Assembly: GCA_964057225.1 (NCBI GenBank)
Contig: OZ059898.1
Coordinates: forward strand, 15,500,001-15,564,000
Direction: 5' to 3'
Origin: Auanema rhodensis
Taxonomy: Eukaryota > Animalia > Nematoda
Length of the DNA: 64,000 nt
Numbering within the stretch: position 1 is the stretch's first letter; each line of letters opens with the position of its first letter. The position numbers and the translations under genes were made by a program. Under the pieces are notes generated by a model. It saw only the letters and a list, made by a program, of their open reading frames with translations, ran no database searches and was not told the DNA's origin. Below, one piece after another: positions 9,650 through 44,252 of this stretch.

Positions 9650-11896
9650 GAGAGAGATTTAAAGAGAGAAGACAAGCATAAAAGTTAAAGAGAAACGTGT
9701 GAGATGAAAATTTTAACATGTTGATGTGGATGTCAAAGGAAAATAGCCCAGCAGGCTATTACAGTCGGATCGACTGATCAAAAGCGGATGAATCGTTGAG
9801 TGTGTATCCTAACTGCAGCAGATCTAGCTTGAACATAGATGACGACGACGACGGCGGCGACATCAACGACGACGAAGACGACGACAACGGCCCAGAGTGT
9901 CTGTTTATTTGCTATTAGACTTCAAGTCTCATGGGAATCTCTTGTGAGGTCAAATTTGACAACTGGATTTCAAATAAGGAAAGTTCAAATTTGACGAATA
10001 TCAGGTGAAAAATAGATTTTCAAGATATTTCGGGTTAGCAGTGTTGAGATAATATGATATTAAGAGGTTATTAAGGATGAGGAAGACAAATCTGAAGGAC
10101 GTCAAGGAGGTACAGTTAAAGGGCTTTGATGTGAAAATAAGGAAACAAGTTACTATTGATAGCCTGATGAATAGACAGAGTATGATGAAAGACGGTCAGC
10201 TGAAACAGATGTGACACAAAGTGGAACATTTTCTCTCTCTCTCTCTCTATTTCTCTCTCTCTCTCTATTTCTCTCTCTCTATTTTTCTCTCTCTCTCTCT
10301 TTCTCTCTCTTACCTTTTTCTTTAACTTAAATGGAACATAAGAAGAATAAATAACATCATTAATACTTATTGTTTAGAAATGAAGAGAGAAATGAAGAAG
10401 AATTGTGTTTTACATCGTTTTTCTAATTTCTCAAACAACTTTTCCCATTTAAACTGAATGTGACAAGAAAAACATTGAATTCTCGATTGACCTTAAGAAC
10501 TAATTATGATGTCTGTTTATGAGATAATCAAAAAAAAGGTGAAAAACGATATTTTCTTCTTTAATAGCATGTACTTCATCTTAAAACTACAAGATTTTTC
10601 ATATTTAAATGAAATTTTGTTCATGTTAATATTCAGAATACATTGACTATTCACATAATATTTTGTATTTTTTTTACTTTTTTGGTTTGAAAGGTTGACG
10701 AATTTGGAGAGACATGTGCTGAGAGCTATGTTAACGTGACCATTAGTGAGGGCGATGATGATGATGATGATGATGCAGAATGTTTGACAACGAAATTTGT
10801 ATGAAAATTGTAGAAAATTTGAGAAGAAAAACTATTTGTCAGATGATGTTCACCTAGAATAAGTAATGACACATCTATTGGAAGAAGGAAAAGACAGAGT
10901 GAGTGAGAGGGTAGAAGTTGAAAATACGATTTTCATTTCGGTTATTTTGAATATGCATAGACGTTTTTGAACAATTGCCAACATGTAATCAGATTTTTTT
11001 TGAATGTCAATATTCTTTTCATGAAGGGATATGAATAGAGAGAGAGAGAGAGAGAGAGAGAAAGAAAGAGAGAGAGAGAGAGAGAAGCCTAGTCTGTAGA
11101 CAAAGAGAAAGAGTTAGAAAGAGGGAATAATTGTCTCTTTCCTGTCATATAATATCAAGAAAATGGATTTTTTGTGTTTGGACAATCAGAAAGGCATCAT
11201 GAAGAGGCATGAAAGTTTGAAAATTTAAGGAAAAAGAAAGATAGTTCTGAATGAATTATTGATGATTTTCAGGATGAAAAGAAGAAAAATAAAGAGAAAA
11301 ATGAGAAAAATTAAAATGAATAGCTAGATGAAAGACGGTTATTTGGCTGTTTTTTTCGGAATTAATAGTGAACTTTACTAGCAAATGTTATAAAAATGGA
11401 TAATTTCAAATGAGATAGTCCAAAAAAAACTTTTTTTTTTTCAGAAAATGTTGTCAGAACAATGATTGTATTGCTATGTAACATCCCTATTTCAAATAAA
11501 AAAAAAGTTAAAAGATAAAATGATAGAAAGTTCAAAAATATAAAAAAAGATTTATTAGTTTGTTGAATAGAAAAGGAGAAGAAATATTTGAATTTTTGAA
11601 AAAAAACAAAAAAAAAGTTTTTAGTTAAGTAAACTATAAGCTGTTGTAAAAATGGTATTGTTTCACATATGGTCAACAACACAAAAGAATTTGAAGTTTT
11701 GGTTTATTTTTTGAAAAAAAAAAAAGAAAATATAGTATAGAATACTATTATATGAATTTATATATAATTAGACTAATATAAACTCTAAAACAACTAACTA
11801 ATACATCTCTTTGACATGTTCTTTATGTTCTAATTTCCGTCAAATGAGAAAGAAAAAAAAAGTTTGACAGACTATTGTATAGTTGAGAAGAGAGTG

Positions 11897-11940
<44 letters not shown>

Positions 11941-12141
11941 AAGTTAAAGAAAGAGAGAGCATGGTCGGTATAGTAGTCTGATGGTTTACGGGCGAAAAAA
12001 AAGGAAAAAGAAAGAGACGGGTAGTATAAGGTGGTATGAAAGTATAGACACATACGTAGAAGAAATGAAGAAATAATAGGAAGCTTGTCGTTTCTACGAG
12101 AGGAAATAATTATAGTGAAGGTATGATAGAGAGAGAGAGAT

Positions 12142-12172
<31 letters not shown>

Positions 12173-14823
12173 TTTGTTTAAAGACAATATAATTAAAATA
12201 AAAAATGTTGTAAATGAAGTGATGAAGTGATGAAATACATAAATACATATACAAGAACGCACATAAGAAATCAACTAATGGCTTCACACCAGAATCACTT
12301 TTCAAGTAATTGCCTGTGGCTACTTCTTCTAACGGTCTCAAACTCTTCCTCTCTCTCTGCCTGTCAGTTCTTTCTCTCTTTCAAATTCTTAGTTCCTACC
12401 TGCCTCACCAGAATTCTTAGAGTTCAATTAAGCGTTAAACGAACAGGTGAAAGTCAGAAAGATGACGCAAACACATATTTGAATCAAAGAATTACAATAC
12501 ACGATTTCATCCGGATAATCTACATAACATAGGCATGTTAATCGAATTCCAATTAGGACTTTCGAAATTTTTTCCTTCAAGCATGTTCGAAAAGAGCCGG
12601 AATGTTGATGTCAAAATTGAAATCTTTTAGCGATTTTCTTCACATTAAAAAACTTGGCAAAGCTTCAAATTGGATTTGAATTAAAAGGAAAAAGCTGACA
12701 TCTAGAGTAAGGCATGTTATAGCTTAGTTTATGTTTAAGACAAGTAAATTGTTGATGAGATGTTAATCATAAACACACAAAAATAATTTTCAATTTGAGG
12801 AAGAGGAAGACCGAGCAGAGTCCAGATGATGCCGGCGATCATCATCTAATATCAACACCAGCAGAATCATCGTCGCCATAGTCTCCACCTTTTTCGCGTT
12901 TCTCCTTCATCTTCTGAGCTTTTCTTTCGTCTACTTCTTCTCATTTGTTTTGCCCGTTCTTCTTCGTCTTCGTAATTCATCTCATAAGTCTTAGAATATA
13001 ATCAAAATATTATGAATGAATTTGAGCAGAAATGCGAAAAAGATAATCAAATGAGGAGGGCCGGTTGTGAGACGATTCAGCACAATTGTCGACACAAAAC
13101 CTGCCCTTAGGCACTTTTTTAATAGATAATTATCTAGGCAATAGAAGATTATTGGTCAGAAGAGTCGGACAAGTTGATCATCATGGTATTTGGCAACTTT
13201 CTTCATTGATCCAGAAGTCAAAGAATCATATAGTTTCATGAAAACGCTGATAAAATGGAAAATAGAAGTAAATAGACAGAGAAGAGTATAAGGAAATATG
13301 TTTATAACTATATGAAATTAAGAAAAAGTTTTATAAAAGATCTTAATCTATAAGAAAGAAATCATTAATTATATGGTTGGATAGGTCAATCCTTTCAACC
13401 TTTACTACTCCTCTCTACACATCCATTATCAGATGTTATAGAAAGATAAGTAAAATATTACTGAGTACTATTGATAATATTTCATATTCATATCTTTAGT
13501 TATTTTAAAATTTTATATATAATTATATATAAAAATGATCAAATTAACTAAAATATTGAAGATGAAAATAGAAAAATTGATTGTTGAACATGTATTTACA
13601 AGAAAAAAATATAAAAAAATATGAATTAGTACGAAAATAAATGTTTTTTTATTATAAAATATAAGAGAAAACAATTAAAATTAGAATTAGAATCAATATG
13701 TTTTTGACCAAAACTGCCATCAGATAGTAGAAATGAAACAAAGAATACAGATGGACAAATAACTGAAATTAGTCATTAGTTTTTTGAAAAAAAGGAAAAA
13801 CGAAAAGAACAAAAAGCTTTGAAATATCTGTAGATATCAAGCTGTATATATGTATATTGTGTTCAACTTAACTATATTATAGTTAATATCACATAAACTT
13901 GAATATAAGAAGAATATAGAGAAAGATGAGAATACTACGACGTCTTTCATTCAAACTGAACAGCTTTTGCGTTAAGAGTTTGAAGCTACGAACACACTCA
14001 CTTACCCACCTCTTTCATATATTCAGGTTGTATTTCCTATCCAACTTGAATATACGAAATAAAACTTTTTTTTTTGGAGAAAAAGAATAAAATAATTTTT
14101 CTTATTTTACTATATGATATGAGAATATATATATATAACTTAACAGGTCAAACATATCTGTATATTTGCCAGAGATTGATAATGATGACGAAGTTAAGTA
14201 AACATGCCAAATATGAAATTGGTTGATGATGAATAAGATGATGATAACATACACTCATACGAACACTCTTACTCTTCTTATAATTCACAAAAAAAAACTT
14301 TATATTTCTTTTTTTTACTTTTAAAATATAATTTTTATAATTTTTATTGATTTATTTTTATTAAAAATATTTTAAATAAGATTTTATCAAGTTTTTACAG
14401 CTTCTTCTTCCCTCTCATTCTCTCTCTCTCTTCTTCTTCTTCTTAAAATTAATAAAAAAATGGAAATTTTACTATCTACACCTTACCTATAGTAGCATTT
14501 CCTTATATCTGAGGAGGATGAACAAACAGTTAACATCCATCTTTTCAAATAAGTTTAAAGAAATTATAAATCTAACTATACGTATATAGTAATTAATATA
14601 TTTATAAATAATAATATTTATTTATTTATTCATTAAAATAATTAAAATAATCATTATTTAACAAAAAAAAAGGAAAAATAACTTTTTTTTTAAATTTATT
14701 TTATTAAATTAATTTTTTTTTCAAAATCTGTATAAATGATTTGTTTAGTTAATAATAAGTTTGAATGAGTTATGAGGAATGAGTACATGTATGTACGACG
14801 AGAAGAATCTGAACCACTGATTC

Positions 14824-23872: not shown

Positions 23873-25345
23873 TTATAATTTTTCTTTTCTTTCTTTTTTT
23901 TTTTATAAAACAAAAAATAATATTTTACTTTAAATTTAAATAATTAAATACATACATATAATATATTTTTATATTTTTTTGTTATTTTCTAAAAAGTATT
24001 TTGTATTATTTTCATTTTAAAATTAAAATTTTAATATTTATTTCTTTCTGAACGTTTATCAAAAATTGTTTTCAGTACAGTGTGCACAATGCTTTATGAG
24101 AATCTTATAAATAGAATATTATTCTATAAAAATGTTTATTATACACATACATAGATATGTTTTATAATTAAATAAGTTTAATATGTTGTATTCTTAACCA
24201 ACTTGAATGAACTTACTATTGCAACTTTTGAGGTCATACATGTCACATCAGCAACCATTTAACATTCACTTTTCAACGTTTTAAAATGATTTATATTAAT
24301 ATTTTTTATAGTTAACTTCAAAATAATAACAATATATTGTATTAATCATAAAATATTGAACAGGTATCATCATCATCATTGTTAATCGTCATCGTTTAAT
24401 GTCCATCTGAATTATTGCCTCGTTCTGGCCAATGATGTTCTACCGTTTCACTCTTTCTCTCCCTTTTTTATTTCTGTTTCTCTCTTCTATTCATATCCTC
24501 TCTCTCTCGATTCACTTGTAACTACTCTATCTTTGTCTTCTGTCTTCAACTATCCGGTTTGCTGATTATGAGTAATACCTTCGACTCCGTCGACGACGAC
24601 CACGACGACGACCACGACGATGATGGTGATGATGCCGACGAGACTGTGGGCAGAAAAATCATTCAACATGCAACTTCCGTCGTTCTCACACATACACACA
24701 CATACACCTACAGCCAGATACATAAACTGAATAATAATAATACGTCAACGAGGCTTAGCATAATTTTGACTGGAAAATCTGGAATCAGTCATTTGAAATC
24801 AATAGCTGAAACCAAACTCAGTTTATGTTCTTTCCATCCTCATCATCTATTTCAGACTTTTGCTCTTCCAATTCATGGACTCGTCATCAATGGATGGCAG
24901 ACTGAACACACATACATACACTCATACATTGACCATTTAACATTCTGTTTACCACTTTTACTTCATAATATCTCATGTTAAGCTGTTGCCTCATACTATC
25001 TCTACATCATTTCATACAGTTTTTATATTCATCCGTTAAGTTTGACAACAAAAAAAGCACCAAATCCCACTAACTATAATCCCATAGTATGCTATTGAAG
25101 GTATATAATCCTCTGTCGCATCTTTCATTGTGTTGTTGCTTCCTCTTCGAACCTCAATGATAATTAAAATCTGAATACCCTGAATATCTTTCACACTTCA
25201 AGCCAACTGTTTTAAATTTACTGCGCGATTCTGGAGCTTTTTCACGCTAAAGCTTCTTGTATCCGCCTTGTCATCGTGTAATTTCCAATTACTGATTTTG
25301 AATTTTCTTTTACACGTTCCATTACTAATAGATTGCGTTTGTTCA

Positions 25346-28300
25346 ATGGGAAGTAAGTCTTCAAAGGGCCGGGTGACGGATCACGTGGCCTTTTCGACCA
25401 GCCCTGATCCAATTCCGAACATTGTGGTGACGAAGCCGACTCCATTGAATAGTCCGGATAGTCCAAAACCATTTGCACCACCACCATCTCCAACAGCTAC
25501 GTAAGTGATTATCGTTTACTTACAGTATCTATTTGGAGTTCTTTTTCTAGATATTATTATCCAGAACAGCCTCCACATCGTGCACCTCCACCGACTCCTA
25601 TGCATATCAGGTGAGCTTTGATTGATGCTAAGCGTCATCATGTTGACGAGGTTTTAAGCTTGACATTAACTAATTTTAGCTCAATGGATTTGGCTTCTGC
25701 TGAAACCTCAATCTTATCTGGAACACCTCCCTTAGACAGACCACCTGATAGACCACCTCCACCACCACCAGTTGATGATGACGATATCCCACCACCAGCT
25801 CCATTACATGTAGCGTTTTCTGGAAAAATTTAAATAATAATTTCAAACCAAAAATCATTTTTTACAGCTTTTAATTTTTGATAGCCTTTCAAGTTTGATT
25901 GGAAAAATCAAATGATAATACACAATCGGACAAACGGTATTCCATGATTTTTGCAATTTCAGCCTGCGCCATTTCCGAAAATAACGGATACTCCAATGCC
26001 TGTGCCATCACCCCGAACAGGTTTACCAACTATTAAACGAAATATTATTTATGCGAAGGTAAATCTACGAAAGATTAAACTTATTTTTTGCATGTTCAAT
26101 TGAAATCATCGTGTATTTGGAATTGAACGCCTCAGGCGATAACCACACAAGATTTACAAACAACTTCATCATATGAATTTCAGGATAAAATCAATCAATA
26201 TGAAGCTTTGAATACAACAGATCGTAAAAAGGAAAATGGATATGTTGCTAAAACTGATGATACATCTAAATATTATTCGATTAAAGATGCTAAGCCATCA
26301 GAATATTCTTCAAGATTTAAGCCATTTACTTCAAGTTCTTCGAAATCTTCACCAACAATGCCAACCAGTGCTACAACACCAGCTGTGACACCTAAAGTAC
26401 TGGCTTACAATTAGTTTGAATTAAGTATTAAGATGAAAAATGTGTTTTCAGTTAGATAACTATCCTATATATAATCCTGTTGCTGATTACTCATTCAAGA
26501 GCGGAACATCATTCCAACAAGGAGCTTTTCCTATTGAATCTGTAAGCAGATTTTCGATTTCTTAATAATTCACACAAGTGTCCTTACTTTTTTCTCACAG
26601 AATCGTATTAATATTGGATTTTGTGGCCGGAAAGGATGCGGTAAATCCACGCTCATCAATGCTTTACGAGGAATTCAGCTTGGTGAGCCGCAATCAGCCG
26701 GCAGAACAACGTGCTCATCAATGGAGCCATTTAGGTATCTCTCATATAATAAAATCATTTGAATACAACATAGCTGTATACTGAATCTATTTTTAGATTC
26801 CTTCAAGAAGATCTTCAGAATATAGTATTATGGGAAATTCCATATCCACAAGCATTCAATACAGTTGTTGATATATATGATCGTAATATGAGTTTTGATA
26901 AGATGTATGAGTAAGTTAATTATCAATTTAACTTTAAAACTTTAAAACTTGGTTTAGAACTCATAAACTTCATCTGTTCACTCATATATTTGTCTTAATT
27001 CCTGATGGTGCTACTCATAATGATGATGTATCATTCAGTAGAATAGTGCATGCTAGGTAAGAATTACAGACAATTTCTTTCATATTTCTATTTTTGTTTT
27101 CAAGACGATCACAAATAACATTTATTTCATCAAAAACTGATGATGATCTTGATGCTGAAAGTAGAGAGTTGGGACGATTCGTCAACGATAACTTGAAGCG
27201 TGAATACGAGACCCGAGGTAAAGCTTTCAGAAATTTCTTTTTTTGAACCAAAAAAAAACTTTTTTTTTTCAACTTAAGCTCGATCTGTATTCTTAAAAGC
27301 CATTCATCAGCGTGGACAAATTTTGAGAGAAATTGATTTATGGTTCATTTCATCTAGCGTTATTAAGGATTTATTATGCGGAACAACTGGGTATACTTTT
27401 TCGAAAATTACATTTCAAAAAAATTTTTTTTCCTCTTGAAAGAAAGAAAAAAAGAAAAATAATTTCCAGACATTTACATTATAAAATGGATGAAATGGAT
27501 CTTATTAACAGTTTGAAACTTAAAATCGGATGTCATTATGCTTTAGAAGCAAAGAGAAAACGCGAAGTAAGACATCATGATATTCATTTTTCAAAAATCT
27601 ATTTTGATAGAGAGAAGATGTCTCATCAATGTCGTCACATTATGAAGAAACTGATATTTATTTATCAAAAAGAGTATAATTATTCTATTAAATTATAAAA
27701 TATTTTATATAATGATTTAGCCTGATGTATACAAATCAGCCCAACTTCCTAAATTTGCACCACCAATTGTTCCAACAAAACCACCTGAGGTAACACCTTA
27801 CTAAGCTTTTTTTCGTTTTATTTCAATTTTTTCTGAGATATATAAGTCAATTTTCTGAATATATTATTGTTTATTACTATAGAAAGCTACAACACTAGTT
27901 GATGCTGGCTTTGAAATATTGTATGGAACTGATGATCGAGTATTTGGTAATATGGAACCAAATACAACAGTTCGAAGAGCTGGAAAGGTTTGAAGCTATT
28001 GAGCTCATTCTTGATGAACATCATGATACAACTTGTTTAGACGGTTTTCAATTATGGCTTTGTTGGAGGAAGTGGTGTAGGAAAATCAGCTATGATAAAT
28101 GCTTTACGTGGAATGTCCTCCAGACATCCATTAGCAGCTGGAAAGGTCAGTTTTAATTTTATTTTTAATTAAAATAAAATTTGAATAAAATTTATTTTTG
28201 TAGTCTCGTGCTAAAGCTGGATCATGTGAACGATTTGAATTTGAAGATGATTTACTGAAATATAATGTAACACTTTGGGAATTACATTATCCCAAGAAGA

Positions 28301-29011
28301 TTAATTCATTTTTTGAATTTATTGAGTAAAAAAAAATTTTTTTTTCACCAAAAATATTAAAAATTTGATTTTTTTAGCCGAAATAATTTCTGTCATTTCA
28401 CTGCTATATTCGTCTTAATTGATGGAGTTCCAACTGATCAAGATTTAGCTTTTTCAAAAATTGCTCACAGGTAAAAGAAAATATTTGAAAAAAAAATTAA
28501 TTTTGAAAACAAAAAAAAACAAAAAATATGTTGAGGATATTTAAAATATTTAATTTGATTAATATATGAGACTACATCTATCTATATGTACATATTTGAA
28601 TTAGTACAATCATTACTATATGAAGTAAAGTTGGCAGATTGACATGTATTTCTCATCAAAAAAAAAATTTTTTTTTTACTAATTCCTCATTATTTGAAAT
28701 TTCATATTTCTTATAAGTTTTTTGTATTTTAGAAGAAATGCTTCTGTTGTATTTCTATCATCTAAAAGTGATAAGAAGCTTTCTACTAGAAGTCGAAGTG
28801 ATGAAATTCCTGTATGTGATTTACTGAAGCAAAGATTTGTGGATAAAGGTATTCATATTCATGATGAATTGAAGAAAATTCTATAATTCTTCTGTAGGTA
28901 TTGCACGATTTGATCGAGCTCTTGCTGTTAGTGCTCCAGAGCTTAGTGGACGAGTACATACATTTTTTGTGTCAGCACCCGTATTTCATGCTCTTAGAAA
29001 AGGTTTGTAAC

Positions 29012-29052
<41 letters not shown>

Positions 29053-29281
29053 ATATAGAAAGGTTCAATCAGCATTTGTTTTACTTAAAATATAATTTAT
29101 ATAACATATATTTGTTTTAGGAGACCCACGAGGTCTACTGTTCATTCTTCATGAAAGAGCTGTTTTCGATTTTCTGAAACAGAAGAGAATCATAGCAGAA
29201 CTGCTGGACACGCCCAACAATCTAAAGGAAGGAATGTATGCCAATGTGAACACGGATACAGCTGGTGTTATTCAGAAATAA
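25346..29281 (+). CDS. Tandem IRG/p47 (IIGP)-like GTPase-domain protein with N-myristoylation signal and Pro-rich N-terminus
   Basis: Multi-exon model with canonical sites. Starts MGSKSSKG, followed by poly-Pro tracts. Domain 1: INIGFCGRKGCGKSTLINALRG...VLWEIPYP...FISSKTDDDL...WFISS. Domain 2: FNYGFVGGSGVGKSAMINALRG...TLWELHYP...FLSSKSDKKL...FFVSA. Ends EGMYANVNTDTAGVIQK*. GKSx2INALRG, LW[D]xP and xKxD are IRG-family hallmarks. Confidence 0.85.
29012..29052. repeat. (TTG)13 microsatellite in the last intron of the IRG-like gene
   Basis: Directly visible; explains the poly-Leu pseudo-ORF. Confidence 0.95.
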
Positions 29282-42854: not shown

Positions 42855-43451
42855 ATTCACCTCTTTCTACGTTTCATTTTTTGTTTCAACTCACTTTCTT
42901 CCTTTAATCCGACAAATTGAAACATTTCTCTATAAGGACCATTTTGTTTATAAAAAAAAACGTTTCTCCTACAAATCATTGTTTACGAGTTGCTACCATT
43001 CTCTCAAGATCAAGATTTATACAACAAACTTGATCTCATTTTCAACTAATTCTGACCCCTATACTTCTTTTGAACTCTTTATGATGTAGTTAATCATTGA
43101 TTTTCTATTATATTTCCGATGTTCTCAACTATTTGTTTTTATTTTTTTGCCGATTTCGATTACATTCGACCTCAATATATCTTTGAGTTAGAACATTAAG
43201 CTTACTCATCCTCATCATTTCACTCAAAACTTGCTTGCCTTCTCTTTATTTCTTTTTCTATGAATCTTTGGCATATCTGCACATCCAACAACAACAACAA
43301 CAACAACAACAACTTAGATATTTATATGTTTAGATCTATAGCATATCTATCTGAATGTATGTATGTAGTTTTATATTTTAAAAATCATATGAACAACAGG
43401 TACCTTTGACTAGAATATACTCAATAACTAGAAAAGTGACAGATAAAGAGG

Positions 43452-43486
<35 letters not shown>

Positions 43487-43490
<4 letters not shown>

Positions 43491-43503
43491 AGGGAGGGAG
43501 GGG
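43487..43503 (+). other. Canonical G-quadruplex motif GGGGAGGGAGGGAGGGG
   Basis: Four G-runs with 1-nt loops, fused to a (GA)n tract. Confidence 0.75.
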
Positions 43504-44252
43504 ACAAAGTAGAGAGGAATTTTTGTGAGTATGATGTCTCTAGAATAGGCTGTATACAACACAGGTTGATAAAGTTCAGAGGCAATCGATGACTGCTCAT
43601 TGGGACAACACCTCATATACTTCGTTCGATCCACAAAATATTTTTTGTTTCTTTTATCTTTTTCACCTTCACACTCGTTTTCATTGATAATCTTTGTTTT
43701 TGGAGCTTTTAAGAGGCTAATGACAAAGCTTTCTATCTTCCATTGATGATTTTTGGATGTCAATCGCTCATATTTGAAAAATCGAAACATCTCCTCTCTT
43801 GCTTCACAAGCAATTTGATGTTCCTGTTTCTCTTACGTATTGTGATGCCGTTTGTTCACATCTCTGACTATCTGGTTGAGTTCACACGTCGTCCTTGCCA
43901 CTACCTCCTTCCTCTCTTTCTTTTCCTCCGAAAGTCCAGGGAGCAACAAGATTTGATAATACTCTGATCTCTTATCATCTCTCAATCAGTTCATAACTGT
44001 TTCCGTTCATTCGTTATTATTCTTTTTCCATCAACACTTTCACTTTTCAGTCTCACTACTCTCTATATTTCAGATAAATTTGTCTTTTTCTCTTCTTTTC
44101 TTACTTTGTATTCCTCTCAACTTTTTATTTCTTTTTCATATTCAGTTGATTGAACTATTTTCGTTGCACTGTCTGGTGCTGTTCTTGTTTCTCCCACCCA
44201 CCACTTGATCTTTCTCCCTCTCTCAAAAACAGTTTTCTTCTCTCTAACTTGC

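Follow-up and report, generated by a model that had tools for sequence, protein, structure and literature searches.

The window analysed here is a 64,000-nt stretch of the Auanema rhodensis genome (contig OZ059898.1, positions 15,500,001 to 15,564,000), and all coordinates given below are those of this stretch. At 25346-29281 on the plus strand, the window contains one protein-coding unit, whose spliced model has 21 exons and a single open frame of 783 amino acids. The encoded protein has four parts: a myristoyl anchor, a proline-rich disordered region with one conserved motif, and two G domains of the type found in the immunity-related GTPases (IRGs). The best explanation, which we hold with high confidence, is that the gene is an orthologue of Caenorhabditis elegans exc-1, with a likely EXC-1-like role in the excretory canal.

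The ATG at 25346 and the stop codon at 29279-29281 were read from the sequence. Exons 1-5 lie at 25346-25500, 25551-25610, 25680-25809, 25963-26058 and 26184-26396; exons 6-10 at 26452-26541, 26601-26734, 26797-26910, 26958-27056 and 27105-27217; exons 11-15 at 27279-27390, 27470-27566, 27611-27673, 27721-27789 and 27883-27987; and exons 16-21 at 28041-28145, 28204-28325, 28378-28470, 28733-28848, 28898-29002 and 29121-29281. In this model all introns are of the GT-AG class, short and of nematode type. Spliced transcript contigs of about 2.5 kb, made up of exons only, were present in four public runs (X1-X4, all from one study) and extended from 25330 or earlier to past 29400. The 15 intron joints listed in these contigs coincided exactly with the modelled positions, and three further joints were unlisted. 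The fact that the contigs lie on exons only and carry the modelled joints indicates that spliced mRNA is present and that the exc-1-like gene is expressed in those four runs.

A start of exon 5 at 26136, which gives a 799-amino-acid protein, was considered and ruled out. Both the contigs and the orthologues place the start at 26184 (acceptor tttcag), so that the protein has 783 residues. An in-frame alternative acceptor, cctcag, is located at 26130-26135, 48 nt upstream of the used one (26183), and would add 16 residues (26136-26183); the downstream acceptor is the one used by the transcript contigs and by all orthologues. At the 5′ end of the gene, the contig match begins at 25330, at an acceptor-like taatag within 25325-25346, and the contigs carry 2-5 unmatched letters at their 5′ ends. 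These letters would fit spliced-leader trans-splicing 15 nt before the ATG.

The N-terminus, MGSKSSK (25346-25366), agrees with the N-myristoylation consensus G-{EDRKHPFYW}-x-x-[STAGCN]-{P} and is followed by basic residues within the first 30 amino acids. Orthologues whose models start at this ATG or a few residues before it likewise have an MG start, with Ser or Gly as residue 6 and Lys next. Residues 31-135 (exons 1-4, 25436-26022) form a proline-rich, low-complexity region (mean column conservation, 0.45). This region is probably disordered, and the Pfam scan of the orthologues found no domain in it. The whole stretch of residues 31-218 is rich in Pro and Ser/Thr and poorly conserved save for one motif around IKRNIIYAKD. 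This motif, LPTIKRNIIYAKDKI..EALNTTDR (residues 136-161, 26023-26225), stands out as an island of conservation in a 21-sequence alignment; it crosses the exon 4/5 junction, and its span includes the intron at 26059-26183.

The two G-domain units follow. Unit 1 (residues 219-471, exons 6-12, 26452-27566) consists of an IRG-type G domain and two short helices. Unit 2 (residues 516-783, exons 15-21, 27883-29278) is likewise an IRG-type G domain, more divergent than the first and highly conserved in its C-terminal part. Between them lies a poorly conserved linker (residues 472-515, exons 13-14, 27611-27789; conservation, 0.31). In a local BLAST comparison, units 1 and 2 were 34% identical over 210 amino acids (E 8e-31), and both have in common the positions and phases of the introns after the G3, alpha3 and G4 regions. 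The homology of the units, together with the common introns, points to an old internal tandem duplication of the G domain within the gene.

The P-loop (G1) of unit 1 is GRKGCGKS, of the GKS type (26625-26648), and GxxxxGKS is invariant in the orthologues covering the site. That of unit 2 is GGSGVGKS (28065-28088), with a G..GKS core invariant in 25 of 25 orthologues. Each P-loop is followed by (T/A)(L/M)INALRG. The G4 motif of unit 1 is SKTD (27130-27141), a (T/S)KxD motif that aligns on TKVD of Irga6 and whose Lys and Asp are present in 25 of 25 orthologues; in unit 2 it is SKSD (28761-28772), and S(K/R)xD is found in all 22 orthologues covering it. The G3-equivalent of unit 1, LWEIPYP (26828-26848), aligns on WDLPG of Irga6, with Glu in place of the Asp and Tyr in place of the Gly of DxxG. 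Of the 23 orthologues covering the position, 22 have these two residues. In the corresponding LWELHYP of unit 2 (28273-28293), the L, E, Y and P are kept by 25 of 25 orthologues. In terms of the canonical motif set, G1 and G4 are intact in both units and the DxxG of G3 is replaced by ExxY in both. An earlier prediction made from the letters alone (hereafter the original prediction) had placed the two P-loops, each with its INALRG, at 26625-26648 and 28065-28088 and had noticed the MGxxxS N-terminus, and all of these were found as described. Its description of two complete IRG-type G domains holds for G1 and G4; it does not hold for G3, which reads WEIPY and WELHY, not DxxG. As G1 and G4 are intact, both units presumably still bind guanine nucleotide, and they would switch atypically.

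Orthology to C. elegans EXC-1

Use of the spliced 783-amino-acid protein was limited to its translation and to BLAST and MAFFT comparisons run locally. Database searches were run with single exons as queries, and the proxies were the protein P0050 of Auanema sp. JU1783, the C. elegans protein P0040 and the orthologue alignment. P0050 (780 amino acids) is the closest protein, with 75.8% identity over the full length. P0040 (NP_001024474.1, UniProt Q7YTQ6), which is annotated as "Uncharacterized protein CELE_C46E1.3", is 51% identical over 647 amino acids. As a check made without the joined protein, P0050 and P0040 were compared with the raw window by tblastn, and both gave colinear high-scoring segment pairs, exon by exon. 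All 12 matches of P0040 in the 181-Mb genome fell inside this gene. A second locus was sought over the genome with the P-loop exon and with the Pfam profile PF05049, and none was found; PF05049 gave exon 7 only, below its cut-off. Since all EXC-1 matches in the genome lie in one gene and no second P-loop or PF05049 locus was found, the gene is very probably the single-copy orthologue of C46E1.3, a gene that the original prediction had mentioned.

A search with one nematode protein recovered 30 orthologues, from Caenorhabditis, Strongylida, Pristionchus, Auanema, Diploscapter, Mesorhabditis, Heterorhabditis, Toxocara, Anisakis and Enterobius, of which the last three are clade III genera. Most nematode species recovered have one orthologue, at 50-76% identity. 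The G-domain duplication is older than the divergence of the recovered nematode clades.

C. elegans EXC-1 and the A. rhodensis protein are colinear along their entire length and share the layout of the EXC-1 orthogroup, with an MG myristoylation start, a proline-rich N-terminal half and two IRG-type G domains. They are also alike in having ExxY for DxxG, a conserved C-terminus and a single gene copy. The two proteins differ at position 3 of the myristoylation motif, which is Ser here, fitting the PROSITE pattern, and His in C. elegans EXC-1. P0040 begins with MGHKTS, the same residues as the published N-terminus of EXC-1. According to the literature, EXC-1 has two GTPase domains and the myristoylation sequence MGHKTS and is the sole IRG homologue of nematodes (PMC7594493). 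The original prediction had described C46E1.3 as a gene noted as IRG-like and uncharacterised. The first part is correct: it was named as a candidate by Bekpen et al., who recognised no unambiguous IRG outside vertebrates and called for structural evidence (PMC1297648). The second is out of date, P0040 fitting the published EXC-1 (PMC7594493, PMC7557474).

Affinity to the IRG family and its limits

A phmmer search with exon 7 (44 amino acids) gave 36 matches among 1.84 billion representative proteins, and the top five were rhabditid nematode proteins with two matching stretches; the best matches of this exon were EXC-1 orthologues. Twenty of the matches were looked up and 15 of these were named. 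Nine were nematode proteins, seven of them labelled "IRG-type G domain-containing"; the other six were IRG-type or SLIP GTPase proteins of fish, shark, reptile, amphioxus and soft coral.

Of all Pfam families, IIGP (PF05049; profile length 375, gathering cut-off 24 bits) scored highest in the orthologues, with 30-59 bits (P0050, 59; P0002, 49.1; P0001, 40.2; EXC-1, 34.1). Its match spanned 130-170 residues in these proteins, and all other Pfam families matched only the P-loop. When the units of P0050 were scored alone, unit 1 reached 47.3 bits, above the cut-off, and unit 2 remained below it at 16.2 bits; unit 2 of EXC-1 gave nothing. Among single exons, only those with a P-loop matched Pfam, with IIGP at 21.2 bits (exon 7) and 15.6 bits (exon 16) and several P-loop families scoring alike. 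These single-exon IIGP scores lie below the cut-off because the exons are too short.

When a profile of 25 orthologues was compared with all PDB sequences, the top 13 matches were all IRG entries, including Irga6 (E 6e-13), Irgb10 (8e-11), Irgb6 (8e-10) and GM4951 (2e-9). The matches to IRGs ranged from 6e-13 to 2e-8 over about 150 residues, unit 1 aligning on residues 64-202 of Irga6 at 6e-13. The next entry was EngA at 7e-4, over the P-loop only. In an AlphaFold2 model of residues 210-780 of P0050, two well-folded units (block pLDDT mostly 72-93) were separated by a disordered linker of 77 residues, matching the linker described above, with pLDDT below 50. Structural comparison by VIA-align gave Z 19.5-20.0 for unit 1 (model residues 36-252) against GM4951, Irgb6 and Irga6, and Z 20.4 for unit 2 (model residues 335-547) against residues 64-257 of Irga6. 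For both units the best matches were to solved IRG G domains (Z 18-20.4 and rmsd 2.2-3.5 Å over 175-187 aligned residues), and the next families by fold were mitofusin (Z 15.4), EngB (14.7) and septin (13.7). The IRG-like tandem of the original prediction is favoured by the IIGP scores, the PDB profile and VIA-align alike.

The likeness ends with the G domain. In the distinctive IRG fold, the G domain is flanked by N-terminal helices and by a large C-terminal helical domain (PMC1297648). The nematode protein lacks the IRG helical domain: the IIGP matches end at profile positions 166-195 of 375, and the structural ones at about residue 257 of Irga6. Each unit is about 215-230 residues long and has just two short helices beyond G5, and IRG chains have about 395 residues. 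The protein is fairly described as two IRG-type G domains in tandem rather than as two tandem IRG proteins. Compared in more general terms with mouse Irga6 (IIGP1), Irgb6, Irgb10 and GM4951, it shares GxxxxGKS followed by (F/L)IN.LRG, the Trp before G3 and (T/S)KxD. It also has, like the p47 IRGs, a residue other than Gln at the position of Ras Q61, and Irga6 carries an N-terminal myristoylation motif as well. Unlike the p47 IRGs, which have an N- and C-terminal helical domain, the nematode protein matches only about positions 27-195 of the 375 in IIGP, has ExxY at G3, and carries two short units in one chain behind a long disordered proline-rich region. The rodent tandem IRGs (e.g. Irgb2-b1) are similar in having two IRG G domains per polypeptide. 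They consist of two complete IRG units of about 47 kDa each, with helical domains, and they are recent, polymorphic immune genes, whereas the nematode duplication comprises G domains only.

IRG-type proteins from outside both the vertebrates and the EXC-1 orthogroup were also seen, all among the exon-7 matches: P0034 and P0066 of Plectus sambesii, P0020 of Panagrolaimus sp. ES5, P0021 of Dendronephthya gigantea and P0036 of Branchiostoma belcheri. The cnidarian match is labelled "interferon-inducible GTPase 1-like", and the short Plectus proteins are about 30% identical to unit 1. Such non-vertebrate proteins could help to root the IRG family.

Proposed function and competing explanations

In C. 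elegans, EXC-1 is located apically in the excretory canal, where it binds EXC-9/CRIP, and it is also present in amphid sheath cells; the defects of exc-1 mutants are partly suppressed by overexpression of RAB-8 (PMC7594493). The mutants have cystic canals in which EEA-1 endosomes accumulate, and RME-1 recycling endosomes are lost in the cysts (PMC7557474, summarising Grussendorf et al. 2016). The genetic order runs from EXC-9 through EXC-1 and EXC-5/FGD to CDC-42 (PMC7557474).

We consider it likely that this function is conserved in A. rhodensis, and localisation and partners are assigned here because of the orthology to C. elegans EXC-1. The protein would be myristoylated co-translationally and held on the apical (luminal) membrane of the excretory canal cell. 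At places with a thin terminal web, CRIP (EXC-9) would engage the N-terminal half of the protein, and the tandem G domains would then promote delivery of vesicles from recycling endosomes to the apical membrane, via RAB-8 and the EXC-5/CDC-42 step. EXC-1 would act genetically upstream of RAB-8 and of the path from EXC-5/FGD to CDC-42, and the outcome would be a constant diameter of the single-cell tube. Membrane remodelling, which the original prediction had offered as an alternative to defence, agrees with the published role of EXC-1 in endosomal recycling and lumen maintenance.

Several points weigh against this explanation. C46E1.3 is taken by us to be exc-1 on the strength of matching published descriptors. 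The functional role proposed for this species is carried over from C. elegans. The tests of fold, Pfam membership and PDB similarity were run on orthologue proxies. Finally, ExxY in place of G3 in both units makes a normal GTP switch doubtful, and the published model of EXC-1 as a "GTPase" may need revision.

The last point leads to a variant of the exc-1 explanation that we regard as possible, though clearly not the favoured form of it. Here the protein would be a non-switching scaffold: nucleotide would be bound permanently or never, the units would not cycle, and they would form an intramolecular pseudo-dimer through an IRG-like G-G contact. Its activity would be regulated by CRIP, bound at the N-terminal half, rather than by GTP hydrolysis. 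ExxY is present in every orthologue covering unit 2 and in 22 of 23 for unit 1, while G1 and G4 are kept, and in Ras the switch II transition and Mg2+ binding depend on Gly60 and Asp57. The substituted residues might, however, still serve, as the backbone NH of the Tyr can contact the gamma-phosphate and the Glu can hold a water on Mg2+. As to the pairing of the units, unit 1 and unit 2 were predicted as a complex with two GTP; the median score (ipSAE) was 0.38 against 0.00 for the best control, which was rated weak support. The three runs scored 0.08, 0.42 and 0.38 and the three controls 0.00; at least 90% of contacts were common to the runs, with a partner pLDDT of at least 83. In the calibration of this score, 5 of 78 solved complexes passed at 0.60 or below, and all four passing mismatches fell in that range. 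The prediction also carried a ligand, unlike the calibration, and the pass was not counted as evidence of binding. Against the pairing, one of the three runs reached only 0.08, the solved Irga6 dimer, if memorised by the model, could explain the pass, and the model of the whole tandem (pTM 0.46, with a disordered linker) gave no confident packing of the units. The covalently pre-paired dimer of the original prediction was not demonstrated by these scores, which lend it weak support. In its most specific form the idea is that both EXC-1 G domains have permanently lost a canonical switch II, the change to ExxY being fixed in the nematode species sampled, so that the protein is a nucleotide-loaded, myristoyl-anchored scaffold with its units paired in-chain and CRIP binding is the on-switch for apical vesicle delivery; this we put forward as a speculation, somewhat less probable still.

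Cell-autonomous defence, as suggested in the original prediction, would make the protein a membrane-anchored tandem IRG that coats or disrupts parasite compartments (e.g. those of microsporidia), like mouse Irga6 or Irgb6. The G domains are truly IRG-like, the myristoylation motif is as in Irga6, and tandem IRGs exist in rodents. This family resemblance is the sole point in favour, and nothing was found beyond it. The p47 IRGs are a polymorphic multi-gene family that attacks pathogen vacuoles, whereas the nematode gene is conserved and present in a single copy, most recovered species having one orthologue at 50-76% identity, and its known function, in C. elegans, is in apical membrane recycling. 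Vertebrate effector IRGs are multi-copy and fast-evolving (PMC1297648). The nematode protein lacks both the IRG helical domain and a canonical G3. Nematodes are not known to have interferon. The known phenotype is developmental, with cystic canals and defective endosomes, and in C. elegans the gene is expressed in canal and amphid sheath cells rather than in the intestine, which is the tissue that intracellular pathogens of C. elegans infect (PMC7594493, PMC7557474). The literature searched contained nothing that ties C46E1.3 or exc-1 to infection, and C46E1.3 is not named in PMC6505153. No evidence supporting a defence role was found, and we regard an immune effector as very improbable.

Least probable of all is that the protein is unrelated to IRGs and belongs to another TRAFAC family (EngA/Der, septin, AIG1/GIMAP or Era) with IRG likeness at the P-loop only: the single-exon matches cover just the P-loop with several families scoring alike, and bacterial EngA/Der also has two consecutive TRAFAC G domains with a non-Gln catalytic position and appears in the Foldseek list, but its sequence similarity is confined to the P-loop (E 7e-4, against 6e-13 to 2e-8 over about 150 residues for IRGs), its domain arrangement is not superposable (rmsd 22-26 Å in the Foldseek alignments), its KH domain is absent from the nematode protein, the VIA-align scores of mitofusin, EngB and septin given above stay below the Z 18-20 of IRGs, and the Pfam matches to AIG1, septin and MMR_HSR1 cover about 20 residues at or below their cut-offs. 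Membership of EngA/Der, septin, AIG1 or Era was ruled out by the profile, Foldseek, VIA-align and Pfam comparisons. Septin, AIG1 and Era, which the original prediction had named as the families whose better score would speak against it, scored lower than IIGP and the solved IRGs, both by sequence and by fold.

Remaining features of the window and implications

Intron 18 (28471-28732) is by far the longest of the gene, at 262 nt, and is A/T-rich with long runs of A and of T. Separate contigs from all four runs overlap 28443-28583 and run into unrelated sequence on either side of 28504-28507; the overlap is probably a low-complexity or dispersed repeat. Intron 20 contains a (GTT)n microsatellite of about 13 units (29013-29052). 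Long TC/GA dinucleotide tracts occur across the window (11823-12341, 43428-43790 and others) and appear as SLSLSL in the translations of open reading frames. An Rfam scan of the whole 64-kb window gave zero matches.

The gene is already known: its analysis rediscovers exc-1, the one IRG-like gene of nematodes, and papers of 2016 and 2020 had already described its architecture, myristoylation motif, apical localisation and endosomal recycling role. The main value of the present result is one of annotation, as it provides a transcript-supported model of the orthologue in another rhabditid nematode. Two modest additions may be useful for work on EXC-1 or on the origin of the IRGs. The predicted structures, which lie near IRG G domains and are without the helical domain, bear on the question of the fold of the C. 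elegans sequence that was left by Bekpen et al. (PMC1297648). The ExxY found in both units (in unit 1 of 22 of 23 orthologues, in unit 2 of 25 of 25) casts doubt on a conventional GTP switch.

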